Assembly: GCA_002269645.1 (NCBI GenBank)
Contig: NIVC01000464.1
Coordinates: forward strand, 274,441-338,440
Source of the DNA: Macrostomum lignano
Lineage: Eukaryota
Direction: 5' to 3'
DNA length: 64,000 nucleotides
Made by a program: the position numbers and the translations under genes. This document shows, in pieces, positions 12,051 through 51,812 of the stretch. Positions within the stretch are counted from its first letter, which is position 1; every line of letters begins with the position of its first letter. The notes under the pieces are model-generated. The model made no database searches. It was not told the origin of the DNA and saw only the letters and a program-made list of their open reading frames with translations.

Positions 12051-12760
12051 ATGCAAGCCGTAAGAGGAAAGCCCAACTGTTTATCGGCCTGACTGGAGCG
12101 CCTGCCCTTTAATTAACTATTATAAAGGCAAAAAGCACTAATTTAGATAGCTCGTAGAGTAGATAAGCGCATCGTTTGCGAGTGACATAATCCAGTTATT
12201 CTAGAATCTGTGGTTATGCGTCACATCTATTAATTGTGCTTTTTCCTAAAGAGTTTTATTTAGTTGTTGACTGTGATTTCTCTAGTTGTTCTAGTCTAAC
12301 TTGTGCTTTTATATACACACATGTTGTTTTGCACCTGTCCTATCAGCACAGCACGCGGTTTTTTTAATCAGTTCTAGCTTCACTGAAATTTCATAATCCG
12401 GCTTTCGTTTTGTTTGTTTGTTCTTTTGCAATGCAGTGAACTGTTTCTTTTAACGTTGTCGTGCACATATACGAGAAATAATTTATATGGCAACGAATTT
12501 TAGTCTTTTTTCTGATCCTCAAAGCTATAGTTTGTGTTTTGTGTACCTTACTTTTCTATTCAGTCAGCCAATTTCCGTAATTACGTTTGTAATTAGATTC
12601 CTTTTCCGCTCACTAAGCCTCTTTTAGTTTGTTGGAATATTTCCAATTATTACTTCTGGGATTAGCTATTGTCAGCTTCAAAGCTCTCGTCTTATAGACC
12701 CAGTGCCCTCCTTAGTCGGTCGTTTTTCGTTGAAATAGTTAAAGTAAATGGATGAGTCAC

Positions 12761-13480
12761 CTTCTGTACCCCTGAGATCTATTTGAGGTTCCCCTTTTGT
12801 ACCCCTAAGATCTATCTGAGGTTCCCCTTTTGTACCCCTAAGATCTATCTGAGGTTCCCCTTTTGTACCCCTAAGATCTATCTGAGGTTCCCCTTTTGTA
12901 CCCCTAAGATCTATCTGAGGTTCCCCTTTTGTACTCCTGAGATCTGTCTGAGGTTCCCCTTTTGTACCCCTAAGATCTATCTGAGGTTTCCCCTTTTGTA
13001 CCCCTGAGATCTGTCTGAGGTTCCCTTCTGTACCCCTGAGATCTGTCTGAGTTTCCCTTCTGTACCCCTGAGATCTATCTGAGGTTCCCCTTCTGTAACC
13101 CTGAGATCTATCTGAGGTTCCCCTTCTGTAACCCTGAGATCTATCTGAGGTTCCCCTTCTGTAACCCTGAGATCTATCTGAGGTTCCCCTTCTGTAACCC
13201 TGAGATCTATCTGAGGTTCCCCTTCTGTAACCCTGAGATCTATCTGAGGTTTCCCTTCTGTAACCCTGAGATCTATCTGAGGTTCCCCTTCTGTACCCCT
13301 GAGATCTGTCTAAGGTTCCCCTTCTGTACCCCTGAGATCTATCTGAGGTTCCCCTTCTGTACCCCTGAGATCTATCTGAGGTTCCCCTTCTGTACCCCTG
13401 AGATCTATCTGAGGTTCCCCTTCTGTACCCTTGAGATCCACCTGAAGTTTCCTTCTGTAACCCTGGGATCTGTCTGAAGT
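12761..13480. repeat. Minisatellite, 33-bp unit, ~21 copies, just upstream of XRN2
   Basis: Unit TT(T/C)TGTACCCCT(A/G)AGATCTATCTGAGGTTCCCC. It explains the (RFPFCTPKIYL)n pseudo-ORF. Confidence 0.95.
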
Positions 13481-13625
13481 TTTACTGAGATTCCAAGGTT
13501 CCCTGCAGTTTGAACAATTTATTTACCTAATATTCATGCTGCCCGAATCGCACGGACAGACAAGAGATCAGTCGCACAGTCAGTAATTAGTTCAGCATTA
13601 ACTCAGCAGCTTCAGTCAGCTAATC

Positions 13626-16600: not shown

Positions 16601-17638
16601 GCTAGCGGCTCCCACGTGCCGCCATCTTGGCGCGGACTAATGAGCGATCCCGACTCGCCTATTATCGACTTTTATCCCATCGACTTCCGCGTCGATCTCA
16701 ACGGTAAAAAATTTGCCTGGATGGGCGTCGCTCTGTTGCCATTTGTTGACGAGGCGCGCCTGTTGAAAACGCTGGAGTCAGTCTATCCCAGCCTCCTGCC
16801 AGACGAGGTCGAGCGCAACGTGCGCGGACCCGATCGACTGTTTGTTCGATCGACGCACCCAGCCGCCGCTCTCATCCAGCGCTTGTATGCTGCCGGCAAG
16901 AAGGCTCAGGTGGAAGACATTGAGACCAATGCCGATGCCAGCCTCACCAGCGGCGTTGGCGGCATCTACAAGCCGGATAAGCTGGCCTATCAGCCTGGCG
17001 ATGATGTGCCTTCGCCAATTGCTCTGCCACAGTTCAAAACTCTGGCGCAATGCCAGGTGGCCTCCTGTCGCTATTCGGATCCCGTGTTCCCGCGCGGCCA
17101 CGTGTTCCCAGCCCGTCCGCTGCCGGGCGCCCGGCCACCGCCGGCCACTCTTCGGCCGGAGGACCTGGAGCCCGGCCGGCAGTGGATGCCGAATCTTGGC
17201 CCGGGCCCCAACGGCGGTCACCGGCCGCGACAGTCGTTCGACTCTGCCGGGCCGATGCGCCGGATGGCATCGGCTGAGCTGGGCTCCGCTGAGCGATTCA
17301 ACACCAGCCGGTATGGCGCTGTGCCTCCGCCTCAGCTGATGCAGCAGCAGCACAGAATGCAGCCTTCGGGTCGGTCTGTGCCGAATTTGCATCACCAGCA
17401 CAATCAGTGGCCTGGCCAGTCGCCTTACCCGTCTCAGCAGCAGCAGCAGCACTATCAGCGGCAATTCCAGCAGCCACCACGGCATCAATTCTATCAGCAG
17501 CAGCAGCAGCAGCAGTACCAGAGCCCGTATCCGCCGCAATACCAAACTGACTGGAGAAGTGGCAGAGGCGGCGGCAGAGGTGGTGGCTACAGCGGCGGCG
17601 GGGGCGGTCGGGAGTCGCGCCGCTACCAGCCTTACTAA
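13626..17638 (+). CDS. XRN2: 5'-3' exoribonuclease 2 (Rat1/XRN2), ~933 aa; exons 13626-14232, 14752-15257, 15545-15901, 16307-17638
   Basis: [53 protein letters not shown]|[53 protein letters not shown]. All introns are GT-AG with consistent phases. Q/G/R/Y-rich tail. Confidence 0.97.
15936..16060. repeat. 17-bp tandem repeat in XRN2 intron 3
   Basis: AGTGTCATTTGACTGTC, about 7 copies. Confidence 0.9.
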
Positions 17639-17721
17639 CTGATTTCTGACTTTGCTTTTTTTGCTTTCAGGGTCCTGTATGTGCATATATTAGAGTGCAT
17701 TTGCAGTGCCGCAACATACGT

Positions 17722-17877
17722 GCGCAACCTTGGGAATCACTCGGCCGTTTCTATTGGCAACACACGCATGTAAGTCGCTATTGGCTGAGAGCAGTCACGT
17801 GACTACTATTCCGTCCAGTAGCGACTTACATGTGTGCGTTGCCAATAGAAACGGCCGGGTGAATCCCTAGGTTGCGC
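17722..17877. repeat. Long inverted repeat / fold-back element (~63-bp arms, ~30-nt loop)
   Basis: 17722-17784 is the reverse complement of 17815-17877, with about 6 mismatches. Confidence 0.85.
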
Positions 17878-18657: not shown

Positions 18658-19188
18658 ACCTGCACCACCTCTCCAACCCTTCAGTCAATCACTGAAGCCT
18701 CCACTGAGACCTGAACCACCTCTGCAGCCCCTCAGTCAGTCACTGAAGCCTCCATTGAGACCTGCACCACCTCTGCAGCCCCTCAGTCAGTCACTGAAGC
18801 CTCCACTGAGACCTGAACCACCTCTGCAGCCCCTCAGTCAGTCACTGAAGCCTCCATTGAGACCTGCACCACCTCTGCAGCCCCTCAGTCAGTCACTGAA
18901 ACCTCCACTGAGACCTGCACCACCTCTGCAGCCCCTCAGTCAGTCACTGAAACCTTCACTGAGACCTGCACTGCCTCTGCAGCCCCTCAGTCAGTCACTG
19001 AAACCTCCACTGAGACCTGCACCACCTCTGCAGCCCCTCAGTCAGTCACTGAAACCTTCACTGAGACCTACACTGCCTCTGCAGCCCCTCAGTCAGTCAC
19101 TGAAACCTTCACTGAGACCTACACTGCCTTTGCAGCCCCTCAGTCAGTCACTGAAACCTTCACTGAGACCTACACTGCCTTTGCAGCC
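18658..19188. repeat. Minisatellite, 51-bp unit, ~10 copies
   Basis: Unit GAGACCTGCACCACCTCTGCAGCCCCTCAGTCAGTCACTGAAGCCTCCACT. Confidence 0.95.
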
Positions 19189-24247: not shown

Positions 24248-27200
24248 ATGGCCCAGAGCTCCGGAGCAAGTCAAAGCGGTGAGGAATCCTTCGAGCCAGA
24301 ACTCAACAAAGCGTTTCGAGATCGGCTCAAACCATGCCTGGACGCCATAGACTGTCTGCGGGCTCAGGGTCTGCAAAAGGACGTCCGACTGCCGGCTATT
24401 GCCGTTGTCGGCGACCAGTCGGTGGGCAAGTCGTCCGTGCTCGAATCCATCTCTGGCATCGACTTGCCCCGCGGTCTGGGCATCGTCACCCGCTGCCCGC
24501 TGATGCTGAGCATGCGGAACCGTGAGGAGGCCGGCTGGTCTGCCAGAATCAAGTGAGGATCAGGAGTTGCCTGCTCAATGTCTGCAACGACTTTTGATTG
24601 AAATTGAATTTTTATTGCATTGATTATGACTTGAATTTATGATTACAGATATAAAACAAAAACAGGCGAGGGCAGGGAGAAGAAACTTACTGGGGCAAGC
24701 GAAGTTGGCCAAGCGATACGCGATGCTCAGAACGAGATGACCAACTCGAGCGGAGAGGTCTCCGAGCAGCTAATCGAGCTGTGGGTTGAGAGTCCCGAGT
24801 CTCCGGACTTGACACTGATTGACCTGCCGGGAATTGCCAGGTAATATCGGATTTGAAATGCTTACATTTTTGTCTAGCAGCAGCAGGTGTGTGCTTTGCA
24901 TGCTATTCGGCGACGTTGCTTGCAAAGCAGGACACAGTTGTAGCTATTAGTAGGGAGACTACCTGCGAAAAGAACTGGCGTCTAAAGTCCCAAACCCTGC
25001 TGAATGACGCCCATCCATAGTGTGAGAAGTTCAGTAATGATCAGAGTAAGGGGGTGGGTACTATGGTATGGTAGAGTAGCTTAGTTGGTTAACGCGTCTA
25101 ACGTTCGAGCCGGCCATTCCGTGCGCGGCCACGTGATCATTCGGAGTGCAGTGCTAATTTTCGGCGGTGCTCAAAGACACCCTAGGGGCTGTGGGTTGAT
25201 TGTCACCTTGATTTGCGGCGATGCTCACAGACACCCTAGGGGCTGTGGGTTGACTCTCACCTTGATTTGCGGCGGTGCTCACAGACACCCTAGGATCTTG
25301 TCAACTATAGACAAGCGTTAGCTGATGACACTTGTTTTCTTGCCATACAATTGATTTAATTGGCGAAGTCTGGCGAACTATCATCCAGGTACTCCATCGA
25401 CGGTGGCGGAGCCATAGCCGGTCTAACCAAGTCCCTCATCCTGAGCTACATTGAAAAGGAAGAAATTTTAATACTGGTTGTCATCCCGTGCCACGTAGAC
25501 ATCGAGACAGTTGAGGCTCTCTCCCTAGCCAAAGAGGTCGACCCGGAATCGAAGCGGACAATCGGAGTTCTCACCTGTCCTGACCTGGTCAACCCAGGCT
25601 CCGAATCAGAAGTCCTGGCGCTCATGCAAAACCGGAAGATTCCGTTGAAGAAGGGCTACGTCTCCGTGAGGTGCCGAACACCGCAGCAGTTGAAGGACAA
25701 CATGAGCCTGCAGCAGGCGGCCAGGGAGGAGGAAGTGTTCTTCCGGACCCATCCGCACTTCAGGGCGCTGGACAAATTCGAGTACGGAACCAAGACTCTG
25801 GCGGTGAAGCTGAGCAGCGAGCTCTACGAGGCTATCAAGCACAACATCCCTGAGCTGATGAGAGAGGTCCAGGTAATTCGCCATGACACCCGGGCAAATA
25901 AAAACATTGGAGGCGGGGGCAAGTAGGTCAGTTGTAAACGTGCCCGGCTCTGACTCGGTTCGATTCTGTGCGCAGCCACATCTATTTGATCAAGAGAGTG
26001 TACGAGCCTGACGATTAGAAAGTCCGTGTGAGCGTGTGTATGACGATTTCGCCAAAGGCGTTGCGCCAAGGCGCCTGCAGCCCTCCTCAATAAATAATTC
26101 AAGAATCAAAGTGATGCTAGGACCTGTAGCTAAAATTTCAAAGCCGTACGTGCCTCGGTTGTTTCGTTAAAATGCGCACCTGTGTCCTGAAAATCGCGGC
26201 CAACAGCTTTTTTATTATTATTGTGGTCACCCATGCTCATTTCCACACACGTACGCTACTGCCTTTTTAGATGAAACGCGAGGATATCTGCAAAAAGTTG
26301 GAAACCATGGGCTGCGGACCGCCCGACTCGATTGAAGAAATGAAGAATCTGCTGGTCAGAATGATCAATAAGTTCACGACGGACTTCGCCAATGTTTCCA
26401 CTGGAACCATCGTCACGAGCCAGACAGGCTGTTTGGTCGCTGCCGCAAGCACTGGGAGACACTGGCTGACGAGATTGAGCAGTGCGCCTTCTCAGAGCGC
26501 AGTGACGGTAAGACCGATACGCTCTTATCGATATGAGTTTTGTTAGGATATGAGACGCTATTACAATAAAATAGGTGAATAGTTCTAAAGACTACTAACT
26601 TATCGTCGGACGAGTATCAGGACGTATCGGTTGCACTCATGGCTAATGATTTGAGGACCAGAAATTTAAATACACTTTACTCCGAAACACCGTAACTTTT
26701 AGAGGTTCTTGAGATGTACTCAAAAAGTACTCATGACTCATGATTACTTCTTGAGATTTACTCATGAATTTAGAATTCATGATGACATAGCTCGATTAAA
26801 TTATGCTGGCACATCTACATCTGCAGCACAGAATCCCTATCAGTTGCAATGCCATTCCCGTTTACACAGTGACATTACAGCACAGAATCCCTATCAGTTG
26901 CAATGCTATTCCCGTTTACACAGTGACATTACAGCACAGAATCCCTATCAGTTGCAATGCTATATTCCCGTTTACACAGTGACATTACAGCACAGAATCC
27001 CTATCAGTTGCAATGCCATTCCCGTTTACACAGTGACATTACAGCACAGAATCCCTATCAGTTGCAATGCTATTCCCGTTTACACAGTGACATTACAGCA
27101 CAGAGTCCCTATCAGTTGCAATGCCATTCCCGTTTACACAGTGACATTACAGCACAGAATCCCTATCAGTTGCAATGCTATATTCCCGTTTACACAGTGA

Positions 27201-30183
27201 CATTACAGCACAGAATCCCTATCAGTTGCAATGCTATTCCCGTTTACACAGTGACATTACAGCACAGAATCCCTATCAGTTGCAATGCCATTCCCGTTTA
27301 CACAGTGACATTACAGCACAGAATCCCTATCAGTTGCAATGCCATTCCCGTTTACACAGTGACATTACAGCACAGAATCCCTATCAGTTGCAATGCTATA
27401 TTCCCGTTTACACAGTGACATTACAGCACAGAATCCCTATCAGTTGCAATGCTATTCCCGTTTACACAGTGACATTACAGCACAGAATCCCTATCAGTTG
27501 CAATGCCATTCCCGTTTACACAGTGACATTACAGCACAGAATCCCTATCAGTTGCAATGCCATTCCCGTTTACACAGTGACATTACAGCACAGAATCCCT
27601 ATCAGTTGCAATGCTATTACCGTTTACACAGTGACATTACAGCACAGAATCCTTATCGATTACAATGCTATTCCCGTTTACACAGTGACATTACAGCACA
27701 GAATCCCTATCAATTACAATGCTATTCCCGTTAACGCAGTGACTGCGATGTGGGAGGCGGCCAAGAAGGACATCGAGGAGCAGAGGGGCTGCGAGCTGCC
27801 AGGATTCGACAACGTGTACCCTGTGGTAGAGCGGCTCGTGCGCAACCACTTTCTCAAGCTGGTCCGGGAGCCCTGCAGCAACTTCTTGGTCTCCGTTAAT
27901 CAGGAGGTCGACGAGACGGTGCGAACCCTCGCTGATCTTGTCTTTGGCGACTATCCAACGTTCAACCAGTTCATCAAGGAAGTGTGCGAGGGCATCAGAA
28001 CCGGGCAGGTAGATCTTGCCAGGGAGCAAATCAGGAACATCTTCACGGAGGAGGAGTTCGTCTTCACGCAGGACAGAATTTTCCTGCTGGAAAAGGACAA
28101 GCAAGTGCAGATTTACTAATGCATTTTTGAACGCCATTTTTTGCAACTTTATCAAACACACTGTAAGTCAAGTTGGATATTGACTTAAATTAATTTATGC
28201 ATGCACATCCTGAATGTTATAAGTTAAAGAATACCAGTTCATATGTAGCTAGTTAAATTGAATGCAGTAAAAATGGCGTACATAGGTGCTGATGACATGC
28301 CTTTTATTATCTGTGCCGGTGCTGGATACACTCGAACACGCAGGTGAATATCGTAGATGCCAGATCAGATTTAGCATCAAATTTTAATGCCATAACGCGT
28401 CTTGTTCTTATATATTTGTGTATTCGTCACTAATTTTTTAGCGTACCGCTAGGAATACAAGAGAGTGGCTGCAGGCTGTCTTTCCAGGGGTCTATGAAAT
28501 TTGCTTGCGAGAAGTTTGCTTGCCGAACTTTGCTTGCCGAACTTTGCTTGCAGTAAATTTGCTTGCCGAGGTTTGCCACCTAAAGTTTTCTTGCGGAACC
28601 CTAAAGAAACTATTTTTGAGCTCTTGTATTTCTAATTTTCATTTTCTAAGATTGTTGGAAGTCGCTTATAGTGTTATTATTTTGTACGAGGATATGATGG
28701 ATTTGAAAAGCCTTAACGCAGAAACTTTCGAAACTCCACGGAACTTTCGGTTCTATTTTAACTTTTGTTCCTCGGTGACAAGTACACGACACTAGTACTC
28801 GTGCAAATCCGCCAGTCCAAGTGCGTTTACATTTTTATGTACACTAATTAGTATATGCAATATTATACATTAGCATCACTACAATTATCATACCTGCTCA
28901 ATCGTGCTGAAATCAGGAACTACAAAGATTTATACTGTTACTGATCCCTTTCTTCTACCTATACTAAATCTCTAATCATTCTATATAATAAATTCTTAGA
29001 ATGAAACTCTATAAGCCTAGTTTGAAAGCTTAGTGTCAAGTCAGTTTACGTCGACGCTGATAAGAATCTACTTGCAAAGCATCTGTGGCAAGTAATAATT
29101 GACTGACCAACTTCACAAGCAATCAAAACAAGCAAGCAGACAAGAAAATAATTCGGCAAGTTAAAACCATGCAATTGTGATTGCGAATTTCTAGGAAGCG
29201 AACATCAAAATTCCGCAAGCAAACTTCGGCAAGCAAATTTCCGAAAGCAAATTTCCGCAAGCAAATTTCTGCAAGCAAAAGTCCCGCAAGCAAACTTCGG
29301 CAAGCAAAAGTCCCGCAAGCAAAAGTCCCGCAAGCAAACTTCGGCAAGCAAACTTCCGCAAGCAAAGTTCCTGAAAGCAAACTTCGGCAAGCAAAGTTTG
29401 GCAAGTAAACTTCGGCTAGCAGACTTCGGCAAGCAAACTTCCCGCAAGCAAACGTCGTACTCCCCTTGCCAGATCAGGAATAAACCAACATCATCTTGAA
29501 CTGCATGCTATCACCGAATAAATTGAAAGTACGCGAGTGCTAAAAAATGTCCGATTATTGAGGCTAAGGATTGAGCGATCCAGCTGGTAGCAACAATAAT
29601 TTTCACAATTACTCCACGAGCAGCTTACAATGCATGGAATATATATTTGTTTGAGTTTGTGAGCCCCCCCCCGTGAGTCGAGAGTTTGCCCCCAATCGGG
29701 CTCTGCAGACTGCAGTATTTTAACAATGCCCGGTTAGAGAATCCTTGGTCTCACTTCGCTGAACAAACCCGTCACCGCCATCGCCACCCCCGCAGGCCGT
29801 ACAACGAGAAGCTCCGCCTGCAGCACCGCAAGCCGGAGTCGGGAGGCAAGAGCGGGGAGGCTTCGATCAGCTCGGAGAAGCCGGCCGCGACAATGCAGGA
29901 CATCGTCGAGCGCAACACGCAGCGAGTGCTGGAAGGAGCCGAGGCGTACATTCGAGTGGCTGTGAGGCGCCTGCAGGACACCATTACCCTGGCAGTCATG
30001 CACTACATGCTGCACAAGATGTCTGACAAGCTGCGTGAGTCGCTCATCGTCCTCGTCACGGAGCCGCAGCCGCTGTTCGACAAGCTGCGCGAGGAGAATC
30101 CCCTGATTAGCGCAAAGAGGCGACACCTGGCAGACAGGATGGAGAAGTTGGCAGCTGCTGAGCAGGAGCTGGCGAGGTTCTGA
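24248..30183 (+). CDS. Mx: Mx-like dynamin-superfamily GTPase; exons 24248-24552, 24649-24840, 25389-25872, 26271-26507, 27740-~28076, 29796-30183; one frameshift and one missing donor as assembled
   Basis: [19 protein letters not shown] (G1), IVTRCPL (G2), [12 protein letters not shown] (G3), [12 protein letters not shown] (G4), RGCELPGF (Mx stalk), and a C-terminal GED ending ...[22 protein letters not shown] like vertebrate Mx. No PH or proline-rich domain. Confidence 0.85.
26825..27730. repeat. Minisatellite, 54-bp unit (some 56 bp), ~16-17 copies, filling Mx intron 4
   Basis: Unit GCACAGAATCCCTATCAGTTGCAATGC(C/T)ATTCCCGTTTACACAGTGACATTACA. Confidence 0.95.
28487..29465. mobile_element. 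Putative non-autonomous DNA transposon in Mx intron 5
   Basis: Imperfect TIRs GGGG...TTTGCTTGCG(A/G)GAAGTTTGCTTGCCGAA, and inverted subterminal arrays of TTTGCTTGC / GCAAGCAAA. No clear TSD. Confidence 0.6.
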
Positions 30184-31333
30184 TCGAGCTGATTCATATC
30201 GGTTGGTTGACAGAAGAGTGACCGTATTGCAATAAGCGTACATAATATTTATAATCAAATAGGTAAAATTTATCTAATTATTAATCAAAGTTTTAGTGTC
30301 TATTTTTCTAGTTTATGTTTGACAAATTTAATTTATCTTCTCGTGGGTGGCAATAATATTCGGAAAACCATTACGCACAACTTCTATTCTCTACTCTTGG
30401 CCGTACACATAATATATTCCAGGTGTTGGCCGACTTTATTAACCGAATGCCACATACAATAGACTATTTTCAATTTACCCTCGAGCTCCCGTGCAACAAC
30501 CCGACGTCAAGCGGCTTTTCCGCTTTTGATAGCCACCCACTATACGGCTCTGAATGTGTTTCTTGACCTAATGAATTAAATATTTATTTATTCGCGTTGT
30601 TTAATATATTTATATTCTTGATGTTAAGTCGTGTAGCTAATTCTTGCATGTAGCAATTTTGAATCAATTTGATGAGTTATTTGTTTGTTTAGAGATCAGA
30701 GATTAATTTATACAGGGGTCGGTAACCTTCTTTCACCTCAAGTGATTAAAATTTGAATGGGACGGGCAGAAAGGTCCCTTAGTGACTGAAGGCCAGTCAC
30801 AGCTGAAGCTGAAACTTCAGCCAATTGAAGTTCACTAGATGAGATATTGTGACTCTATGCTAAACAACTGGAGACACTTCCTATCTTCCTATAACTTGTC
30901 ATTACGCCTAAAACTTGAAAGCCTTTGATGCCCGTAGTCACAAAGCAAAAAAGTACCTGTAATTACAGTTGTCCCTTCACTAGTTTTAGTTGTCCCTGAG
31001 TCCCTCTGCTTAAAGCTTCTCAGCAAGTTAGATTACTTTTACAAAGGTAGACGCACACATTACTACTAGTGGTTCACTAAGTATATAGACTGATTAAGTT
31101 TGATAGCTGGGCACTTGCCTTTTAAACCTTATTAATAAATAATTCGCTGATCTAATTCTTCAATTTCAACCTATTGATAGCAGGTACGCTGTAACAGCAG
31201 AATAATTAATTCTAAATGACCGTCTGCTCCTGATTTTTAAAAAGTCAATTAGCTATATATACTGTCAAGTTTCTCTCAACGAAAACATTGTTATAGCGAT
31301 CATAGCATTGGAAGTCATTTATAAGCCTGCAGC

Positions 31334-31654
31334 ATGACAGATCAGCAGCATTTCAAATGGTTCGGCAATCCGCCATTTCGATGCTCCTTTAAATTCCTTA
31401 GCCAGCGCCTCCCAGAGTTGACGACAGCCGGCCAACTTACCAGCTCGTTTGACACCGCTGACGACGCCTCCGTCTGCAGCGACGCCGCGGCGCAGCAGGA
31501 CTTGATGGACTCTGAAAGTGCTGTGCCGTCTGGTTCGCAGGACTTCCAGCTGAGCATGCAGAAGATTGGCTGGTTCTATCAGCGGGACAAAGGCTGCTAC
31601 TCTCGGTGTCCGAAGAATCAGCTGAAGGAGGACATTCTTCAGAAACCTAACTAA
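31334..31654 (+). CDS. Small ORF of unknown function (106 aa)
   Basis: GC-rich island in AT-rich DNA. The ATG is preceded by a ...CTGCAG acceptor-like site. No family recognised. Confidence 0.35.
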   Translation: MTDQQHFKWFGNPPFRCSFKFLSQRLPELTTAGQLTSSFDTADDASVCSDAAAQQDLMDSESAVPSGSQDFQLSMQKIGWFYQRDKGCYSRCPKNQLKEDILQKPN

Positions 31655-31964
31655 CCAAAACATCGAGTTTAAATGTTTAAAAAGTTTAAAGGCTCTAAAA
31701 AATTGCCCTCATTTTGTCGAATGTCAATTCTTGTTAGACCTCCACCGCGCTACTGAGGCCACTTATACATGCAACGTGTAAGCTTAAATAAACTTTCTAC
31801 AGGCTAATAATTTTTAGTTATGCTTACAATGTAGGCAAATTTTACGTGAAAGACAAGGCAGAGACGAGAATTTTGATGTAATGTACATAACTTTTAGAAC
31901 AAAAAATACGCTGTCAGAGTCCTTCGATGGCAGCATCACATGCAGCTAGAGCAAACCTCTGGTG

Positions 31965-32607
31965 GGCAAGGTCGCAAACCAAGGCCGCGCCATCGACCGA
32001 ATCCACGGCACCAACTTCAGCCAGCAGGCAGTTGACGTAACGCCAACAAGTGCGCGCCTGTCCCCGCCGGTAAGGTGCCTGCAGCGTCATCAGCAGCAGG
32101 TCCTACAATGGTTGTGGGCAGTGCGACTCGGCACGGATCATATGTTGCCTGTCTGGATGGACCAGGCCGGCGCGGCGATGCAGGCACCTTACCGGCGCCG
32201 ATCTTGTTGTACAGCAGGACGGTCTCGACTGGAACAGCGCCGCCCTCTGGTTGTCGGGTAGGAGCCTCGGACTGGTGCAGGACTGCCCTCGCAGAACAAA
32301 AGGCAAATCCAGGCAAGCCCGCAGCGACGCCTCAGATCCTTGTGGACGCCGGTAACCAGCAGACCGCCAAGATAGATAACAACACGGAAGCTCGATCGGT
32401 TGTCTGTCCATCTGCGCCTCGGCACAAAATTGCAGCCTTTATGTCGTCCACAAGGCGCAGAGCGCGACGTTCTTCTGTGTGTTGACCACACCAGGCCGAC
32501 ACTCCCCACAACAGCAATCAGCTTGTCAAGTTGTCGCTGGTCATGCCTTCGACAGTTGAGGACAGCAGGGCGAGATCGTCGGCGTAGCCAAGTACGCTGA
32601 GTCACTC
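31965..32607 (-). mobile_element. 5'-truncated non-LTR retrotransposon (LINE) RT 3' fragment, CpG-rich
   Basis: LSVLGYADDLALLSSTVEG, QRQLDKL, YLGGL, AVETVLLY, with frameshifts. Confidence 0.8.
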
Positions 32608-34604
32608 TCTCCAGAACGTTGCATCCAGGCCATTGTAGATCCTATACCTGCATGTACAGTGAGACGTACTCTCAGAAAAAAGTAGCAGTTGCACTGAATT
32701 TAATGACTTGCCCCTTAGTAAATGTTTTAGACGGAATATGGCGCCAAAGTGAAGCCCATAATTTTAGTTCTGTGCCCCGCCCCCTCACCATGAAATATTT
32801 TTATTTTAAAATTTTGTTTTTGTACGTATAGTTTTGATTAATCTTGATTGATAATTTACACGTATGTGTAGGAAATTGTTTTGAAACTAGCTCTTCGTAA
32901 TCGCGGTCTAATAATGGTGAGTGGTTTTCAACATTGTGACATTTCGGTCTTAAGTTAATTAGCCACGCGTGTTTAGGGAGCTCCCATCTCTCCTCCTCGA
33001 TAACCGCGATTGTGGCTTTCTACTATTACTAATAGAAACCAGAAGAGGAACATTCCTTCTGCATTCATGACAGTCGCCCTTGAATTACAGAATAGAAGTT
33101 GTACGACAAAGTGGAGCGGTCGGCATGGAAACCGAACAGCTGCAGAAGTGCACGCGTCAGCGCTCATTCAAAGGCTGCTCTACTACAACTCAAGCTACTT
33201 TCTTCATAGACGTGGAACATCTCAGTCAGAGTTTTCTTTACTTCGCATTGGGTTTGCTTAAATCGAAAAGAGATTCCAGGAAATCTGGTGGCCAATTCAA
33301 ATTCACCAGGATCGTCAATTTCAAATCTCCAACCGAACGTAGGCCTACGTACTATTCCAATACCACATCCACAATCAGTTTCGGGGCAATGGGCATACTT
33401 ACACTTATCCACATGATATTGCATAACTGTTTATACTTTCTGACATACACTCGATCTCAATGTATTTACCATATTTAGCATATGGTAGGCCTACTTTTTG
33501 TTTTTAGCATGTGTCTGTCAGTGTCAGTGCCATGCCCATGCAGCATTGCAGTCCAGTAGTAAGTAGCACAGAAAATTTCCAACTGGACCTCCCCCCATTG
33601 TCCATATCTGACTCTCTTGATGCGGCTCTCATACCTTGGTTGGAGATTGAGTGCCTCTTGATGAATCTTTTGTTTTGCCTTGGACTTTTAATTCATATCT
33701 ATGAGTATGAGTGTAGGCCTATGAGGCTATGACTAGATGTATTTTTATAATTTAGCCTAGCCTAGGCCTATCCCAATATAGGCCTAATAATGCTGAATGC
33801 TGCACTACAGGGCCTAGCCGCCTAGATGTAAATATGCATAAGCTAGGCCTACATATGATAGAAGTAAAAAATAAATTCACTTTGGGTTTGGAATTGCATT
33901 GCAACATTAAAAAGTAATAAAAATAATAATCTAGTTGTTTTTTTTCTTTTGTATTTTATTATTATCATTATTAAACAGATGCTAGTGCAGGGGTCAGCAA
34001 AGCATCTGGCGAAATCCAAAAACGTGGGATAAAACAGTAAAACAAATCTGCGGACATTCGATGGAAAGTAATGTATCTAAAAAAGGTTTTTGAAAGATAG
34101 ATAGGTCCTTAGAAAATAGTTCTGGATAAAAACTATTGTTTTCATGCTTTATATTGTTGAATAAATAAGAAAAAACCACAAAAAAGCATTTTGAAAGTCC
34201 GAGTTGACCGATTTGCAATTTTTTGTTTCACTTTTTTTCATTATTAAACAATTAATTTTAAGACTTGTAGGCCTTAGAGAAGGCTAATTTTTTTACTACT
34301 TACAAAACAGAAAGTAATCTGTGTTTTACTTTTTATTCAATTCAAAAAGATGAAGTATTTCTAAGGATTTCAAAGTTTTTCTAAAACCATATAAACTCGC
34401 AAAAATTCATACTAATATAAAGTGCAAAGTTTGCCAGCAAACATCTTTTTCTAAAAGTAAATATATCGCTAATTCCTTGTTGCAAAATAATCTTTAAGTT
34501 GTTTTCTTTCATTTAAATATCAACTTGCATAGTATTAGTATTTGTAATATGCCTATATTTAGACTTAAAAATTTTGGGTAAAAAATGGTACCACAAAATG
34601 TGAA

Positions 34605-42900: not shown

Positions 42901-44533
42901 CTTAGCAGTAGCTTTGGTATTTAGGGCCTAATATATATATTAAGTTTACTAGGCCTAGCCTATCAAAATAAATTGTTAATTATTTCTAGCTGCTATATGC
43001 CTCATGGCAAGCAATATTTTTGATGCCTTAATTCTATAATTTATCAATTTGTATTATTATAGAATCTATGGTTATATTTCTTATGTTAGGCCTAATTCTT
43101 AGGCATATTATCAGTACATGGTCTAGACTAGACTAGATAGGCCTATTGCTAGATGATCTATCAAAATATTATTTATTAAAAAACACTTTCACTAAAGAGT
43201 AACACTGTTAAATAGAAAATTATTTCATTGAACTTAGTTTATTATAGTACAGAATAGTAGCCATCTATGGTACGTGCCATTGCCACATATGATGCCAGGC
43301 ATGCTTGCCATATTATGGATCCTATTATAAGTATGCTGGAAAGTATTTGGCTATCTAGTAAAATGTATGCAAATAAAAAATGTTATTAACAAACATAGAA
43401 ACAATGCAACAAGCAGTCAATATGGCAAATAAATTGCTACAAAAAATAAAACCTATATACCTATATCATTTAAAAGAATAAAAATAATTAATAAAACAGA
43501 ATAGCTATGTTTATTATTGATTTAGGTGTTTTTTAACTAGTAACTATAAAAATTGTTGGTATATTATTTAAAAGCCTAATTTATGCAATGATGTCACATA
43601 CTTCAATGCTTTTATACACTGTGCTGCAGACTTGAACAAGTATAGTTAAGACCATTTTAATGTACAGGCTTACAAGATCTTTAGTAGCATCATGATTGGT
43701 CTCTGCATCTTCTACCAATCAAGTGAGCTCATTATCAAAAATATCCTTACTACTCTTCATCATACTTGGCTTCATGCATTTTTTATGTACTTTGCTTATT
43801 TAATATCATTTTTGTAATTTTGGTTTTTTATTTGCTTTGTTTGTTATTTAGACCTATGTTACCTATGATATATTATATTATTGCTAAGAATCTTCAATTA
43901 GGGGCAGTCTAACTCTTGTGCCACAGTGAACCCTGGTTTGATTCCAGGTGCGAACACAATTCATTCATTTGGGGCTTGTGCACAAAAATATTGTAGGCTT
44001 GATTGAGTTGTTGTGCAATTCACAGCCATTAGGGCCAACTCAAAGACAGAGTGTACATGTGTAATGATTAGAAAGTCAAAGGGCTGATGTACACTCTGTG
44101 TGAGCGTGTGTATGAGTATGTGCCTGAGTATAGTAGCCACACAGTATGAGCAGAATTGCCTCAGTGCTGGTTCATACATGCGCAACAGTCGGCCGAGTCG
44201 GCCGATCTGGCCGACCGATTTGGCGGCCAACCAAGGAAGTCGCAAAAATGCCCACCCAAAAAACACCCAAGAAGTAGTACTAAGTAGCTGACGAGGCATT
44301 TTGGGTTAATAAGACAGTCATAGTTACTCCTGCCGTTTACCCAAAGTTGCGTTAATTTTGCTTTAGGATTTTTTTACATGTAAGTCGCATTTTTGGCTAA
44401 AAACTACGTCGCATTTTTGTTAAACTAAGTCGCACGGCCGACCGAATTTTGGAGGTTGCGCATGTATGTGCTGGTTGCAGGATGTCACATTACAAAATGA
44501 GTGATAAAGTGAGTAAATATAAAATACTTCTGA

Positions 44534-47500
44534 ATGAGCCGCTATCCGCGCTGGACAGGCCGCAATGCTGACTGCTATGCTTGGATTGGCCAGCCAGCCA
44601 GACTGACTGTTGCCAGACCCGAGCCAATAGTAGAAAGCAGACAGGCTGCTAATGAAAATCAACAGCCAGCAGATGCTGCCAATCTACAGGACTGCTACGT
44701 GATTGACAGGAGTGGCGCGTTCGAGTTAAGCACTGGGGCTGATGACTTTGTTCCCGCTAGGCTGCTGTTACACGCTGAGTTTCTCGCTGCACCAGCCAGT
44801 GATGAGGACCTTGCCGATGATGCTGATGAGCCTGAGGCAGCGAAACTCTTTGATCAGCTGCTCCATGGACTGCCCTGGCGGACATCTGCAGAAGAATTAA
44901 GGTGAATATTTGAGTCTAAGGCAGGGGTAGCAATCCGGCCCTCTGATGAGCTTAGATTCTTTATCTGGCACTTTTAGATAAAAATGTTTGCTAAAACCCT
45001 ACTCTAAGACAATTGACTGCCAACCTAGCCTTAAACAGTGTTGGGCATTAACACGTTAAATATTTAACTCTTTGTTGACGAAGTTAATTTTTTTAATCAA
45101 CTTTGCCCAACACTGTCCTTAACCCTAACCTAACCTACAATCCTGAACTGAACCTAAACCTAGCCTAAACCCCAAGCCTACCCGTAGCCTAAACCCTAAA
45201 CCTAACATTCAATCCTCAACTGAACCTAAACCTAGCCTAAACCCCAAGCCTACCCGTAGCCTAAACCCTAAACCTAACCTTCAATCCTCAACTGAACCTA
45301 AACCTAGCCTAAACCCCAAGCCTACCCGTAGCCTAAACCCTAAAACTAACCTTCAATCCTCAACTGAACCTAAACCTAGCCTAAACCCCAAGCCTACCCG
45401 TAGCCTAAACCCTAAACCTAACCTTCAATCCTCAACTGAACCTAGCCTAAACCCCAAGCCTACCCGTAGCCTAAACCCTAAACCTAACCTTCAATCCTCA
45501 ACTGAACCTAAACCTAGCCTAAACCCCAAGCCTACCCGTAGCCTAAACCCTAAACCTAACCTTTAATCCTCAACTGAACCTAGCCTAAACCCCAAGCCTA
45601 CCCGTAGCCTAAACCCTAAACCTAACCTTCAATCCTCAACTGAACCTAAACCTAGCTTAAACCCCAAGCCTACCCGTAGCCTAAACCCTAAACCTAACCT
45701 TTAATCCTCAACTGAACCTAGCCTAAACCCCAAGCCTACCCGTAGCCTAAACCCTAAACCTAACCTTCAATCCTCAACTGAACCTAAACCTAGCTTAAAC
45801 CCCAAGCCTACCCGTAGCCTAAACCCTAAACCTAATCTTCACCTCCAACCCTAAACCTAACCTAAAACTCTTAATTCTCTTTAAGCTTTTCAATTCCTGC
45901 AGTAGTATTTTTAAAATCTAATTTCAACAGCATGGGAAAGCGTCGACCGCAGGCGTGCCAGTTTGGCGAGCCGTTCGCTTCCCACCAACCTGCGGACTCG
46001 GCAAGCGTTAGCCGCGATTGGCCGCTGTCCGCCCTGCGTCAGCTGCGTCATCGGCTTGGCAATCGGCTTGGCATTGAGTTCAACTCGGTCGTCTGCCGGC
46101 TCTACCGGGACTGCCGCGACAGCTCTGATGATGTTGATGGCGGGGACTGTCCGAGTTTGGGCCGGCATCCCAGCATTGCCTGGCTAGTGCTGGGTCGGTG
46201 CGGCCTGCGGTTTCGTTTCACGCAGCGGCCTGGTCGCAGGTGAGCACTGTAATCACTCCCTAAGCAATATTACCTGAGCTCCTCTGATCACTCCCTAAGC
46301 CACATTCCCTGAGCCTCTGATCACTCCCTTAGCCTCTGATAACTCACTGAGCCTCTGATAACTCCCTGAGCCATATTCCCTGAATCTCTAATCACTCCCT
46401 GAGCCTCTGATCACTCCCTTAGCCTCTGATCACTCCCTGAGCCATACTCCCTTAGCCCCTGATCACTCCTTTAGCCTCTGATTCCCTGAGCCATATTCCC
46501 TGAATCTCTGATCACTCCCTGAGCCTCTGATCACTCCCTGAGCCATATTCCCTGAATCTCTAATCACTCCCTGAACCTCTGATCACTCCCTTAGCCTCTG
46601 ATCACTCCCTTAGCCTCTGATCACTCCCTGAACCATATTACCTGAATCTCTAATCACTCCCTGAGCCTCTGGTCACTCCCTGAGCCTCTGGTCACTCCCT
46701 GAGCCTCTGGTCACTCCCTGAGCCTCTGGTCACTCCCTGAGCTTCTGGTCACTCCCTGAGCCTCTGGTCACTCCCTGAGCCTCTGGTCACTCCCTGAGCC
46801 TCTGGTCACTCCCTGAGCCTCTGGTCACTCCCTGAGCCTCTGGTCACTCCCTGAGCCTCTGGTCACTCCCTGAGCCTCTGGTCACTCCCTGAGCCTCTGG
46901 TCACTCCCTGAGCCTCTGGTCACTCCCTGAGCCTCTGGTCACTCCCTGAGCCTCTGGTCACTCCCTGAGCCTCTGGTCACTCCCTGAGCCTCTGGTCACT
47001 CCCTGAGCCTCTGGTCACTCCCTGAGCCTCTGGTCACTCCCTGAGCCTCTGGTCACTCCCTGAGCCTCTGGTCACTACCTGAGCCTCTGGTCACTCCCTG
47101 AGCCTCTGGTCACTCCCTGAGCCTCTGGTCACTCCCTGAGCCATATTCCTCCTGAGTGATATCACTGCATGATCACTGAATTAACTTTATTTTAGCCAAT
47201 CCTCAATCTGCGCAAACTCTACCCGCACGCAACCGTGCAGGCTGCGCCACCCTCTATCGCCCGTTATCGACGTTCACCTGCCCCCTGGCGGACTTCTACT
47301 CGCTCGCGGCTCCCTGCTTCGCGACTGGCGCATCCAGCTGCCGCCGGACCCAACAAGGTCGCAGGCGTGCGCGGCTCTGCTGGCATTCCGTCTGGTTGTG
47401 TCGCGGCCCAGAGAGCGTCTCACTGTTGTGCCGGATCGCAGCCACCGATCGGCGCTGTCGGAGCGACACGGCTGCCTACCAGCCGAGATGTGGTTCACCC

Positions 47501-48868
47501 GGGCCGGGCTGGCCAAGCGCACTGTTGGCTCGGCAACTAAAGCTTTGTACGCTTGGGCCGACTGGCTTAGGCCTGGCGAAGGTTGCGAAGGCGTCACCTG
47601 CAAGACCGTGCACTTTTCGGCTGATGGCGGCGTCTGGCCTGATTGGATGGCTCGGCTGGCAGCCGCGGTGAGCAGCGTCACTGACAATGCCAGACAGGGC
47701 CTGCCCAGTTACTCCTATGTGGATGCGCTTCTCATGCAGCGGATTAATGACCACCTGCCGTGGCAGCCGAGTGAGATTGGCCCGTTTATGGCTGTAGTTG
47801 CCATGGGCAATGAGGAGGTGAGTCTGCCACTCACTCAAGTCAGTCAGCCAGTCAGTCAGTCAGTCAGTCAGTCAGTCAGTCAGTCAGTCAGTCAGTCAGT
47901 CAGTCAGTCAGTCAGTCAAGTCAGTCAGTCAGTCAGTCAGTCAGTCACTCAAGTCAGTCAGTCAGTCAGTCAGTCAGCCACTCACTCAAGTCAGTCAGTC
48001 AGTCAGTCAGCCACTCACTCAAGTCAGTCAGTCAGTCAGTCAGTCAGTCAGTCAGCCACTCACTCAAGTCAGTCAGTCAGCCACTCACTCAAGTCAGTCA
48101 GTCAGTCACTCAAGTCAGTCAGTCAGTCAGTCAGCCACTCACTCAAGTCAGTCAGTCAGTCAGTCAGTCAGTCAGTCAGTCAGTCAGTCAGTCAGTCAGT
48201 CACTCAAGTCAGTCAGTCAGTCAGTCAGTCAGTCAGTCACTCACTCAAGTCAGTCAGTCAGTCAGTCAGCCACTCACTCAAGTCAGTCAGTCAGTCAGTC
48301 AGTCAGCCACTCACTCAAGTCAGTCAGTCAGTCAGTCAGTCAGCCACTCAAGTCAGTCTCTGCCCCCATCCAGGTGCGCAGGCCCCTGGAGATGCGGCGC
48401 CGGGCCGAGTCCGATGCCGACAGCACGGCGGAGGTGCGCGGGCAGCTGCGCTCGGCCAGCGTTGTACTCGGCGCCGGCGACGTGTTGAACCTTCGGCACG
48501 GCTTCTTCCGCGACTGGCAGTTCCGCTTGCCGAGGCACCGTCAAGGCAGCGGCGGTCGCGGAGTGCTGTTCCTGCTGTTCCGGCTGTCGGCTCCAACGTC
48601 GGCGACAGCTCAGGCTGGTGACGCTGAAGCGGCTGGATTGCGGCAGACGCAGTCGAGCGTCAGGAGCAGCAGCGGTGTCACTCTGCGCACAGAGCCGGAG
48701 GCGTGTCCTCACCTGTGCAAGTGCTGCGCTCGCTGCTCTGAGGCTGTCAGCCTGCTGGATCTCGGCGGCAGCGGCAGGTACGCCGGCAGTGGATTGTCGT
48801 GTCCGCTGTGCTCAAAGGAGGCGGCCCGCTGTGTCAGACTGAGCTCAGCTGCTGCCGCTCTGGCCTGA
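44534..48868 (+). CDS. ALKBH3-derived protein with two tandem AlkB-fold domains lacking catalytic residues, plus a Cys-rich tail; ~582 aa; exons 44534-44901, 45931-46239, 47241-47817, 48374-48868
   Basis: VIDRSGAFELS (cf. ALKBH3 VIDREGVYEIS), LFDQLLHGLPW, FNSVVCRLYRD, PSLGRHPSIAWLVLG, LPPGGLLLARG...DWRIQLP...LAFR. The pattern then repeats (PDWMARL, GPFMAVVAMG, GDVLNL...DWQFRLP...LLFR). Three GT-AG introns join in frame. Confidence 0.8.
45036..45115. mobile_element. 80-bp mini hAT-like MITE
   Basis: 12-bp TIR CAGTGTTGGGCA...TGCCCAACACTG. Flanks GCCTTAAA / TCCTTAAC match at 6 of 8 positions. Confidence 0.6.
45120..45870. repeat. 72-bp (and 66-bp) minisatellite rich in CCTAAA/CCCTAA
   Basis: Unit TGAACCTAAACCTAGCCTAAACCCCAAGCCTACCCGTAGCCTAAACCCTAAACCTAACCTTCAATCCTCAAC, about 10 copies. 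Confidence 0.93.
46255..47145. repeat. 19-bp minisatellite (CCTCTGGTCACTCCCTGAG) with degenerate 5' copies
   Basis: Directly visible; fills intron 2 of the AlkB-like gene. Confidence 0.95.
47825..48357. repeat. (CAGT)n microsatellite filling intron 3 of the AlkB-like gene
   Basis: Directly visible. Confidence 0.97.
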
Positions 48869-49612
48869 TCAGCTTGGATGTGAAATCTCTAATATTAAAT
48901 TTAGTGCCTTAGCTACTGAGACTGTGATACGTGTTGTAAATCTGATATTATTGTTTGTATCCATTTTTTTCCTTTTTGGTGTTCTGATTATTTATTTATC
49001 AGAGATATTTTACTTAATGGATTAATACCACGCTATTTCAAATAACAACTTTTTATCGAATTTTACAGCTGTTTTTTTTATCCTTAATTGCTTCCCAAAA
49101 TATTTTAGCGGCTTTTTGTTGAGTAGCCAATTTATTTATAGTTTAGTTGTGTTGTAAACTGTACTTTGTTGTCCGTTTTCAAAACTTTTCCGTTGTATTA
49201 TTTTTTAATATACAATAAAGTGTCTACATAATTTTAGATTGCATATATAGTAACGTCTTAGTCTTGATTCTTTATTTGTCGGAAAGCGAATATAACGCGT
49301 AGTGCGGTTGTAGGCTTAAACTTTTCGTAGCCTAATATATATTAAATACTAGGGGTGTTGCAGAAGTTTCCAGACTCTCAACTGTACGTCATTCTGCTCA
49401 CAGTGACACCAGAAAGCTGGATTTGTAAAAAAAATGGACAAAAATTGGACCCGGAATAGGAGAGAACAAGCAAGGGGATAATTAGGGACTCCAAATGAGT
49501 TTAAGTTTACATAATAAGTCCCTAATTATCATCTATGAATCATCATCTATCAGCAATGTTTCTATTACAAAGTAAAATGACTAGGTAGCTTTTATTCAGA
49601 TGTGTAAAATAA

Positions 49613-50200
49613 ATGGTTAATATTTTGCCTTCCATGCGACTCGCAACAATGAGCGACAAGCAAAAGCAGAATCAAAATGGCAGCGAACTAACCAAGGTGC
49701 TGATGGGTGGCTCCTTAGGCGTGCCAATCATGCTTGGCTATTACTCATTGATGCTGCCGAGGTTCACCGTCTGGCTGGCTATCGATGCCCAGCAGGCAGC
49801 TGATCCAGTGTATAGGCTGGGCCTCGCTCTGCGCTGGCTAGCTCCCGTGTGCCTCACCGTGGTTGCCTGCATACAGGCTGTGGCCACCTGTCGGATGTTT
49901 AATCCGTCCATTGACGGCAGGACGCCTCATCGAATGACAGATCTATGGCGCAGCATCCTGCAGAACACGCTTGAGCAGGCAATGGTGCTGACGCTTAACT
50001 TGCTGGCTATGTCGCAGAATCTGCCATCGGAGAAGCTGGCGGTTGTTCCTATGGCTGTTGTGCTGTTCATTGTTGCTAGGGTGATCTTTGCTATTGGCTA
50101 CATCATTTGGCCGACAAGACGAGCTCTGGGCTTTAGCCTCACCCATCTGCCCAATGTGGCCATGACTGCCTACAATGTTGGCTGTTTGCTTCGCTTCTGA
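49613..50200 (+). CDS. TMEM79-like / MAPEG-superfamily multi-pass membrane protein (intronless, ≤195 aa)
   Basis: Several hydrophobic helices. LQNTLEQ...NLLAMSQNLP.EKLAVVP...LFIVARVIFAIGY...RALGFSLTHLP matches the TMEM79/MAPEG pattern. The start codon choice is uncertain. Confidence 0.75.
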   Translation: MVNILPSMRLATMSDKQKQNQNGSELTKVLMGGSLGVPIMLGYYSLMLPRFTVWLAIDAQQAADPVYRLGLALRWLAPVCLTVVACIQAVATCRMFNPSIDGRTPHRMTDLWRSILQNTLEQAMVLTLNLLAMSQNLPSEKLAVVPMAVVLFIVARVIFAIGYIIWPTRRALGFSLTHLPNVAMTAYNVGCLLRF

Positions 50201-51182: not shown

Positions 51183-51701
51183 ATGTTCTGCAGAAGTATC
51201 ATCAGCCGGACACTTTCGCACTGCCGCTATCGCCCGGCGCCCCTAGCAACCGTTGCTAGGCCAGGATCGTTGCAGCAGAGGCGATGCTACATGGTGCCAA
51301 TTGTAATTGAGCAGGACGGTAGAAATGAGCGAGCCTACGATGTGTACAGCAGATTGCTGAAGGACCGGATTGTGTGTCTGATGGGCCCTGTCAGTCAGGA
51401 GCTGTCCAATGCGGTGATTGCCCAGCTGCTGTTCCTGCAGTCTGACAGTCCAAAGTCCACCATACACGTGTACATCAACAGTCCCGGCGGCTCGGTCACT
51501 GCCGGCTTGGCTATCTACGATACTATGCAGTACGTTGCCAGCCCTGTGGCCACTTATTGCCTTGGCGAGGCCTGCAGCATGGGCTCGCTTCTGCTTCAAG
51601 CTGGCAGTCCAGGGAAACGGTTCGCTTTGCCTAACTCTCGTGTAATGATCCACCAGCCATTGGGATCGGCTGGCGGCCAGGCCACTGATATGCAAATTCA
51701 T
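51183..51701 (+). CDS. CLPP: Mitochondrial ClpP protease, exon 1 (173 codons); remainder presumably beyond the window
   Basis: Arg/Ser-rich presequence, [53 protein letters not shown] (catalytic Ser), MIHQP (catalytic His), then donor CAT|GTGAGC at 51702. Confidence 0.95.
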
Positions 51702-51812
51702 GTGAGCATTCGGGGCTGTAAAGCTACATCATATTTTCTACTCGAAGATATTTACGAGTAGTTGCAATAATCGCCTCTGACTTTCTATGAGCAGACCCAT
51801 TAAATTAGCATC

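Follow-up and report, generated by a model that had tools for sequence, protein, structure and literature searches.

A diverged ALKBH3 paralog of Macrostomum lignano that has lost its iron and 2-oxoglutarate ligands and is probably a pseudoenzyme

We analyzed a stretch of 64 000 nucleotides (hereafter, the window) that agrees base for base with contig NIVC01000464.1 of Macrostomum lignano, and examined the gene annotated exactly at positions 44534..48868 of its forward strand, BOX15_Mlig023741g1, whose product (PAA82540.1, 582 amino acids) is labeled "hypothetical protein" in GenBank and is the same as the spliced translation of the window. This product is probably a non-catalytic pseudoenzyme, judging from its sequence. 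It carries a domain of ALKBH3 type whose Fe(II) and 2-oxoglutarate (2OG) ligands have been lost while the fold appears to be kept, and a paralog with intact catalytic motifs exists in the same genome; on these grounds, the pseudoenzyme suggested in the original prediction, which was drawn from the DNA letters, also seems to us the best reading. As a whole, the explanation that we prefer, with a probability of roughly 0.6, is that the gene is an old, diverged paralog of ALKBH3 that has been selectively maintained as a pseudoenzyme and acts by binding.

Results

An ALKBH3-type domain without its ligands

Human ALKBH3 (ABH3; PDB 2IUW, 8JNK and 9NCZ) is an Fe(II)/2OG-dependent demethylase of 1-methyladenine and 3-methylcytosine in single-stranded DNA and RNA. 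Domain 1 of the window protein (44696..47412, + strand; amino acids ~55-283, spanning introns 1 and 2) is a double-stranded beta-helix (DSBH) of the ALKBH3 type that lacks the Fe(II)/2OG ligands. A phmmer search against PDB sequences returned human ALKBH3 as the sole match (E = 1.2e-11, residues 98-291). A HMMER scan of 1.84 billion representative proteins gave 73 matches at E ≤ 1e-3, and those other than the protein itself and its paralog P0002 (described below) were confined to residues ~41-325 in the numbering of a 597-amino-acid form, which is the domain 1 region. An AlphaFold2 model based on a 35-sequence alignment reached a predicted local distance difference test (pLDDT) score of 80-95 over residues ~55-283, and when the model was searched with Foldseek, the top ten matches were human ALKBH3 structures (E = 4e-16, template modeling score 0.80-0.86, normalized by target), then ALKBH2. 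Domain 1 therefore has the AlkB-type DSBH fold in its predicted structure, and the structural comparison with ALKBH3 that had been proposed as a check agreed with the original prediction.

In human ALKBH3 numbering, all three positions of the iron triad are changed (H191 to D, D193 to G and H257 to I), as are three of the five 2OG contacts (N179 to R, R269 to A and N271 to L), with Y181 and R275 kept. The pocket and base-flipping positions are also remodeled: R131 is replaced by Q, Y141 by A, Y143 by H, W190 by V and E195 by C, the R122 hairpin is replaced as well, and T273A is among the other family-conserved positions lost. Here we take N179, Y181, R269, N271 and R275 to be the 2OG ligands of ALKBH3, and R131, Y141/Y143, W190, E195 and the R122 hairpin to be its pocket or flipping residues. 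In the window protein itself, the degenerate HxD site is D192-G193-G194 at 46136..46144, inside DSSDDVDGGDCPSLG (exon 2), whereas in exon 3, I257 (47332..47334) stands for the second triad His and A270-A271-L272 (47371..47379) for R-I/V-N. The claim that domain 1 is derived from ALKBH3 and lacks the canonical ligands was thus borne out by both the alignment and the phmmer match.

To set these losses against the rest of the domain, we compared the 63 columns of the 35-sequence alignment in which conservation among ALKBH2/3 is 85% or more. The window protein keeps 32 of the 63, compared with 54 in P0002, and the retained positions are mostly core Gly, Pro and hydrophobic residues and the FNS/Y/D residues. 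On this sequence comparison, a retained fold combined with a lost site is characteristic of a pseudoenzyme rather than of random decay.

The protein might nevertheless still be an enzyme, using alternative metal ligands in the acidic DDVDGGDC cluster, or another cofactor, for a non-canonical chemistry. Arguments for this are that the Asp in place of His191 is a residue capable of binding metal, that D189, D194, Tyr181 and R275, the final Arg, have been retained, and that E195 has given way to a Cys beside the site. However, two of the three facial-triad positions are Gly and Ile, which are non-ligating, three of the five canonical 2OG contacts (N179, R269 and N271) have been lost together with the base-pocket residues, and we know of no 2OG oxygenase that works with a single carboxylate ligand; we therefore regard retained catalysis as very improbable. 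A halogenase-like reading, in which the carboxylate is exchanged for Gly, was ruled out because both His residues have been lost as well.

Intact paralogs in the same genome

The paralog P0002 (UniProt A0A1I8FX44; BOX15_Mlig033276g5, PAA54966/PAA85907; 511-526 amino acids), also from M. lignano, matched the window protein at E = 1e-34 with 36% identity and was collinear with it at query residues 56-500 (597-amino-acid form), the identity being 37% in domain 1 and 32% in domain 2. Its domain 1 has intact HxD..H..RxNxTxR motifs (WHADDEPSLG, DWLHSVP and RINLTFR), is recognized by Pfam as 2OG-FeII_Oxy_2 (E = 1.6e-33, 117 bits), and the protein is ~40% identical to vertebrate ALKBH3. Its C-terminal half is degenerate in the same manner as domain 2 of the window protein (HLPWREA.., DWRYQLG and VFLFL). 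The corresponding gene, Mlig033276 (represented by P0002/P0074), consists of four exons with minisatellite-filled introns and encodes no Cys-rich tail. A third AlkB paralog, P0112 (488 amino acids), has intact catalytic motifs and no second domain; P0002 and P0112 score 117-119 bits in Pfam. The check for a separate active ALKBH3 that the original prediction had suggested thus gave a positive answer, Mlig033276, with P0112 as a second intact AlkB paralog.

Because the intact Mlig033276 has the same degenerate second domain, domain 2 appears to have been dead before the duplication. In terms of the motifs compared, the two-domain architecture and the dead domain 2 are older than the duplication; the loss of catalytic residues that is specific to the window gene is confined to domain 1. 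The earlier statement that catalytic residues were lost twice in this gene is therefore misleading: both domains lack the triad, but the loss in domain 2 is one that the gene has in common with its intact relative.

A probable second AlkB-like repeat

Domain 2 (47413..48604, + strand; amino acids ~284-495, spanning intron 3) would be a degenerate AlkB-like repeat common to the window protein and Mlig033276. When the two domain-2 sequences were compared with an AlkB/ALKBH3 alignment using hhalign, the score was 36.7, whereas 200 column shuffles gave 14.1 ± 2.6 (maximum 26.4), so that none of the 200 reached the observed score (z ~8.7). The matches were collinear and in register over ~80-110 residues: HLPW aligned with (D)W-H, F.AV.A.G with P.IASLS.G, RPLE with R.F.L, L..GD..L.HGF..DW...L with L..GSLL.M.G.TQ.DW.H.VP, and FL with NLTF. 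Similarly, hmmsearch (Z = 1) detected domain 2 of the window protein at E = 1.4e-6, and BLASTP between domains 1 and 2 gave E = 0.007 with 38% identity over 42 amino acids at equivalent strands. In the full-length AlphaFold2 model, residues 408-489 (pLDDT 60-80) follow the same order of elements as residues 205-276 (strand-strand-strand-strand-short helix-strand-strand), and the seven elements correspond one-to-one.

Alternatively, domain 2 could be an unrelated, lineage-specific alpha/beta extension whose DW..L.. and hydrophobic-FR matches are convergent or driven by composition, which would leave a single dead AlkB domain with an appendage. In line with this, Pfam contains no family for domain 2 in either paralog, the domain-2 profile had no match at E ≤ 10 among PDB sequences, the hhalign probability was 31-62%, domain 2 modeled alone with AlphaFold2 (2-sequence alignment) reached a pLDDT of about 39, and Foldseek returned nothing below E = 0.5 for that model. 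The profile was built on just two independent sequences, and when it was run against the set of 5.8 billion proteins, nothing was returned, the input proteins themselves being missed as well, which makes this search uninformative. The shuffling test, the two sequence searches and the one-to-one elements of the full-length model nevertheless argue against an unrelated origin, as do the weak Foldseek matches, which, coronavirus receptor-binding domains aside, were mostly 2OG oxygenases. Such an origin thus seems unlikely, and we regard domain 2 as a putative AlkB repeat, moderately supported by profile and model comparisons. The second repeat that had been predicted was accordingly supported, although much less strongly than domain 1. 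As to its site, the triad-aligned positions are Q-P-S and Phe, which agrees with the predicted absence of the triad, but the predicted absence of the first 2OG-binding Arg was less clear, since the register of domain 2 at the first Arg of RxNLTFR is ambiguous; the paralog has no Arg there in either register.

Probable selective maintenance and expression

A homeologous locus (L001, NIVC01000971), with the same neighbors as the window (dynamin upstream, and MAPEG and ClpP downstream), holds a second copy of the gene with an intact open reading frame (ORF) and identical splice sites. This copy, "hypothetical protein BOX15_Mlig023741g2" of M. lignano, was the single match when the window product was searched against 5.8 billion proteins; the g1 copy (PAA82540.1) was tied to the window product through a protein-cluster look-up. 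Between the two coding sequences there are 9 differences in 1794 positions, three of them nonsynonymous and six synonymous; with N = 1336 and S = 455 sites, the ratio of nonsynonymous to synonymous rates (dN/dS) is ~0.17 (one-sided binomial test, P = 0.011).

We also simulated neutral substitution of the coding sequence. At 80% amino acid identity, the mean was 5 stop codons and 0.5% of the runs were stop-free, and at 60% identity there were 10 stop codons and none of 200 runs was stop-free. The window protein has no stop codon despite being 36% identical to its paralog. This long-term ORF argument is stronger evidence for selection than the dN/dS of the homeologs. Given two copies with an intact ORF and intact splice sites, a deficit of nonsynonymous differences and the stop codons to be expected under neutral drift, we infer from the sequences that the locus has been selectively maintained and is not decaying.

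A redundant duplicate could also drift neutrally in a neopolyploid, duplication-rich genome, with its ORF open by chance, i.e. as an incipient pseudogene. The catalytic residues have all disappeared, change has affected half of the family-conserved positions, the protein has fallen below recognition by Pfam, no orthologs were found elsewhere, the low-complexity tail differs by a Cys between the two copies, and the M. lignano genome is highly redundant (PMC5730564). Neutral drift is, however, difficult to reconcile with a 582-codon ORF in four canonical exons that is intact in two copies, with simulations that expect 5-14 stop codons at a far lower divergence than that seen, with the selective retention of core Gly, Pro and hydrophobic positions in a confidently predicted fold, with three nonsynonymous against six synonymous differences (P = 0.011), or with membership in an annotation derived from RNA-seq. 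We consider it improbable, though less so than retained catalysis.

With respect to expression, the annotation of M. lignano was obtained by genome-guided assembly of RNA-seq data, and novel transcripts below 0.5 reads per kilobase per million were discarded (PMC5730564). The presence of the gene in this RNA-seq-derived annotation suggests that it is expressed.

The divergence between the homeologs is uneven along the gene (window 44534-48868 versus L001 10001-14501). Identity is 99.6-100% in exons 2 and 3 and in introns 1 and 2; seven of the nine coding differences fall in exon 4, and in the 1 kb upstream, where there are large indels, identity is only ~81%. Such a pattern suggests gene conversion or recombination between the subgenomes.

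The Cys-rich tail

The 87 residues that follow domain 2 (residues 496-582) are unique to the window paralog and missing from P0002. They contain a Cys cluster (48704..48844, + strand) of the form C-x3-C-x-CC-x2-C ... C-x2-C ... C, with eight Cys in 47 residues. A zinc knuckle in this tail is possible but unsupported: no family and no zinc-binding domain matched the tail in Pfam at E ≤ 10, its pLDDT in AlphaFold2 is below 50, its DNA is rich in TGC/GCT, of low complexity and GC-rich, and the last Cys of the tail is Ser in the homeologous g2 copy. The Cys-rich C terminus that had been predicted is thus present as a cluster, although it belongs to no zinc-finger family, is absent from the paralog and varies between the homeologs.

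Gene model and introns

The gene consists of four exons that splice in frame with canonical GT..AG ends at every intron, as had been predicted; the intact frame of ~582 amino acids equals the GenBank model, and all of the motif strings that the prediction quoted are present in the spliced translation. Exon 1 (44534..44901, + strand, with the ATG at 44534) encodes amino acids 1-122 plus 2 nt, comprising a degenerate ALKBH3 N-terminal motif (RWTG..AW, compared with RARVQGAW in ALKBH3) and the start of domain 1, and its donor, AAG/gtgaat, is kept in the homeolog. Exon 2 (45931..46239, + strand) encodes the core of domain 1 with the degenerate HxD site and is 100% identical in the homeolog. Exon 3 (47241..47817, + strand) completes domain 1 and continues through the linker into domain 2, of which it encodes the N-terminal two thirds with the motif HLPWQPSEIG; its acceptor, gtgcag/GCTGCG, is likewise kept. 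The C-terminal third of domain 2 (DWQFRLP and VLFLLFR) and the 87-residue tail are encoded by exon 4 (48374..48868, + strand), which ends with a TGA stop codon at 48866..48868. A candidate polyadenylation signal, AATAAA, lies at 49214-49219, ~350 nt past the stop codon.

Intron 2 has an alternative acceptor AG that would end it at 47195, start exon 3 at 47196 and yield a product of 597 amino acids. This model was dropped in favor of the acceptor at 47241, because the 582-amino-acid form aligns gap-free to the paralog at the disputed acceptor; it also equals GenBank. Older WormBase/UniProt models of the BOX15_Mlig023741 gene (P0076 and P0077) omit 25 amino acids at the start of exon 2 and bear the names "HECT domain-containing protein" (557 amino acids) and "SAM domain-containing protein" (917 amino acids, fused to upstream sequence). 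The UniProt name HECT was rejected for the alternative model because Pfam gives no HECT match; on this basis, both names look like annotation artifacts.

Each intron is occupied for ~70-95% of its length by one tandem array (a 72-mer, a 19/33-mer and (AGTC)n, respectively). In intron 1 (44902..45930, + strand; 1029 bp), ~725 bp are a minisatellite with a 72-bp unit at 45117..45841; intron 2 (46240..47240, + strand) is nearly all 19-bp and 33-bp minisatellite (46252..47142); and 521 of the 556 bp of intron 3 (47818..48373, + strand) form the (AGTC)n-based array. The introns of Mlig033276 (L003 6523-7584, 8064-8809 and 9121-9843) are likewise ~60-95% minisatellite, each of a different kind (24-mer, 21-mer and 40-mer), and further arrays at 12760-13481, 18658-19188 and 26824-27743 of the window are situated within or close to the XRN and dynamin genes, between or beside coding ORFs. 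Such minisatellite-filled introns may mean that introns grow or turn over in an unusual way in the M. lignano genome, a subject on which we found no paper in the literature.

Surrounding sequence

Immediately upstream of the gene, 65 bp from the ATG, is a 296-bp insertion (44173-44468) resembling a miniature inverted-repeat transposable element (MITE). The insertion is hAT-like, with terminal inverted repeats of 14 bp that match perfectly (CATACATGCGCAAC) and a target-site duplication of 8 bp (TGCTGGTT). The homeologous locus has no such insertion at 9930-9945 and reads TGCTGGT-A-GCTGGTT there, which resembles an excision footprint. A third copy of the 14-bp repeat, with one mismatch, occurs at 17715-17728.

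In the eukaryotic DNA of the window, exons are GC-rich, spacers AT-rich and minisatellites numerous, and the neighborhood consists of ordinary nuclear genes, the host genes all being on one strand: an XRN 5'-3' exoribonuclease (13626-17638, +), a dynamin (25360-34000, +), a MAPEG-family protein (49613-50200, +; 745 bp downstream of the stop codon) and ClpP (51183-51761, +). A reverse-transcriptase retroelement ORF that is GC-rich (68%) lies at 961-2499 on the - strand.

Discussion

We propose that the ancestor was an ALKBH3 that already had a C-terminal, degenerate AlkB-like domain without a metal site, as in Mlig033276. After duplication, the fold-determining core would have been preserved in both domains of the window copy, practically all Fe(II), 2OG and base-pocket residues of its domain 1 would have been replaced, and the 87-residue Cys-containing tail would have been gained. 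Its product, predicted to be incapable of Fe(II)/2OG oxidative demethylation, might use the second domain that it shares with the active ALKBH3 to serve in the pathway of that enzyme as a scaffold, a partner or a competitor, or else be a generic binder of single-stranded nucleic acid; the protein is Arg-rich, and its isoelectric point is 8.7, that of domain 2 being 9.6. The original prediction had offered a reader of methylated RNA or DNA, which is not favored: judging from the replacement of R131, Y141/Y143, W190, E195 and the R122 hairpin, we rank a methyl-base reader as less likely than these roles, because the base pocket has been remodeled too.

Several observations weigh against the pseudoenzyme explanation. 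No Pfam family, including 2OG-FeII_Oxy_2 (PF13532), matches the window protein even at E ≤ 10, and to this are added the negative Pfam, PDB, AlphaFold2 and Foldseek results for domain 2 given above. The three introns of the window gene all lie at positions other than those of the introns of Mlig033276, which is unexpected for a simple duplication at the DNA level, and shared intron positions as a demonstration of such a duplication were thus discarded. The dN/dS is based on only nine differences in copies that separated very recently (~99.7% identity in introns 1 and 2), and the search of 5.8 billion proteins and the scan of 1.84 billion representatives found no ortholog outside M. lignano, so that long-term constraint is unmeasurable, although the lack of orthologs may be a sampling effect. 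The dN/dS and ortholog comparison that had been suggested as a check was therefore favorable within the species only. As regards expression, the Mlig023741 and Mlig033276 identifiers do not occur in the full texts or supplements of Macrostomum papers that we searched. Finally, the binding or scaffold role is pure inference.

A more specific and rather speculative version of the proposal is that the two proteins form an enzyme/pseudoenzyme pair, in which the dead paralog regulates the active ALKBH3 by heterodimerizing with it, by competing with it or by holding alkylated single-stranded nucleic acid unrepaired. It would do so through the second domain that both have, perhaps with the help of a Cys tail that binds zinc, and alkylation-damage repair or RNA demethylation might thereby be regulated. 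We consider this pair unlikely as a joint proposal; if true, it would give the AlkB family its first pseudoenzyme regulator as well as its first tandem-DSBH protein, and because M. lignano is amenable to RNA interference and transgenesis, the pair is experimentally tractable.

AlkB-family dioxygenases have been studied almost only as enzymes. The gene itself is already known, being in GenBank as a hypothetical protein, but a doubly dead ALKBH3 paralog and an active ALKBH3 whose C-terminal domain is AlkB-like and dead both appear to be undescribed in the literature that we searched. A selectively maintained AlkB member with a wiped site, together with an ALKBH3 that has a dead second domain, would extend to nucleic-acid demethylases both the pseudoenzyme concept and the tandem of catalytic and dead DSBH domains in the style of OGFOD1/Tpa1. 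The value of these observations is narrow, since the gene has been seen in one species so far and the second AlkB fold is moderately supported by the sequence and profile comparisons.

Comparison with known systems

Among known proteins, ALKBH3 is the closest match of domain 1 in both sequence and structure, and the window protein shares with it the N-terminal extension, the FNS..Y.D, PSLGRHP.IA, G.LL..G, DW and FR motifs and the DSBH core. Unlike ALKBH3, it is about twice as long, with an extra second domain of ~210 amino acids and the 87-amino-acid tail, its triad, 2OG ligands and pocket residues are changed, and it is below threshold in Pfam. Mlig033276, from the same species, is collinear with it in both domains and has the same degenerate second domain, four exons and minisatellite-filled introns; in contrast, Mlig033276 keeps HxD..H and RxNxTFR, passes the Pfam threshold, lacks the Cys-rich tail and has all three introns elsewhere.

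The original prediction knew of no description of such an architecture. We found none within the AlkB family, but a precedent for a catalytic DSBH joined to a dead one is provided by OGFOD1/Tpa1p/Ofd1, tandem-DSBH prolyl hydroxylases in which the N-terminal DSBH is catalytic and the C-terminal DSBH, of probable duplication origin and lacking a metal site, serves in partner binding or in dimerization/oligomerization (PMC4396695). The order of a 2OG-oxygenase domain followed by a second DSBH without a metal site makes these proteins the best functional analogy for domain 2. However, they belong to another 2OG-oxygenase subfamily with no detectable sequence relationship, and their N-terminal domain is active, whereas both domains of the window gene are dead; a catalytic N-terminal domain with a metal-free C-terminal domain is found in P0002, not in the window protein. 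The resemblance to OGFOD1, so far as the analogy reaches, is one of design only and not of family membership.

For the loss of catalysis as such, there are parallels in JARID2 and Epe1 of S. pombe, pseudo-oxygenases of the JmjC branch in which catalytic residues have been lost or are not needed, and which have experimentally shown roles as scaffolds or regulators. Like them, the window protein would be a member of the Fe(II)/2OG oxygenase family that works without catalysis, although JARID2 and Epe1 belong to the JmjC rather than the AlkB fold subfamily and are ancient and widely conserved.

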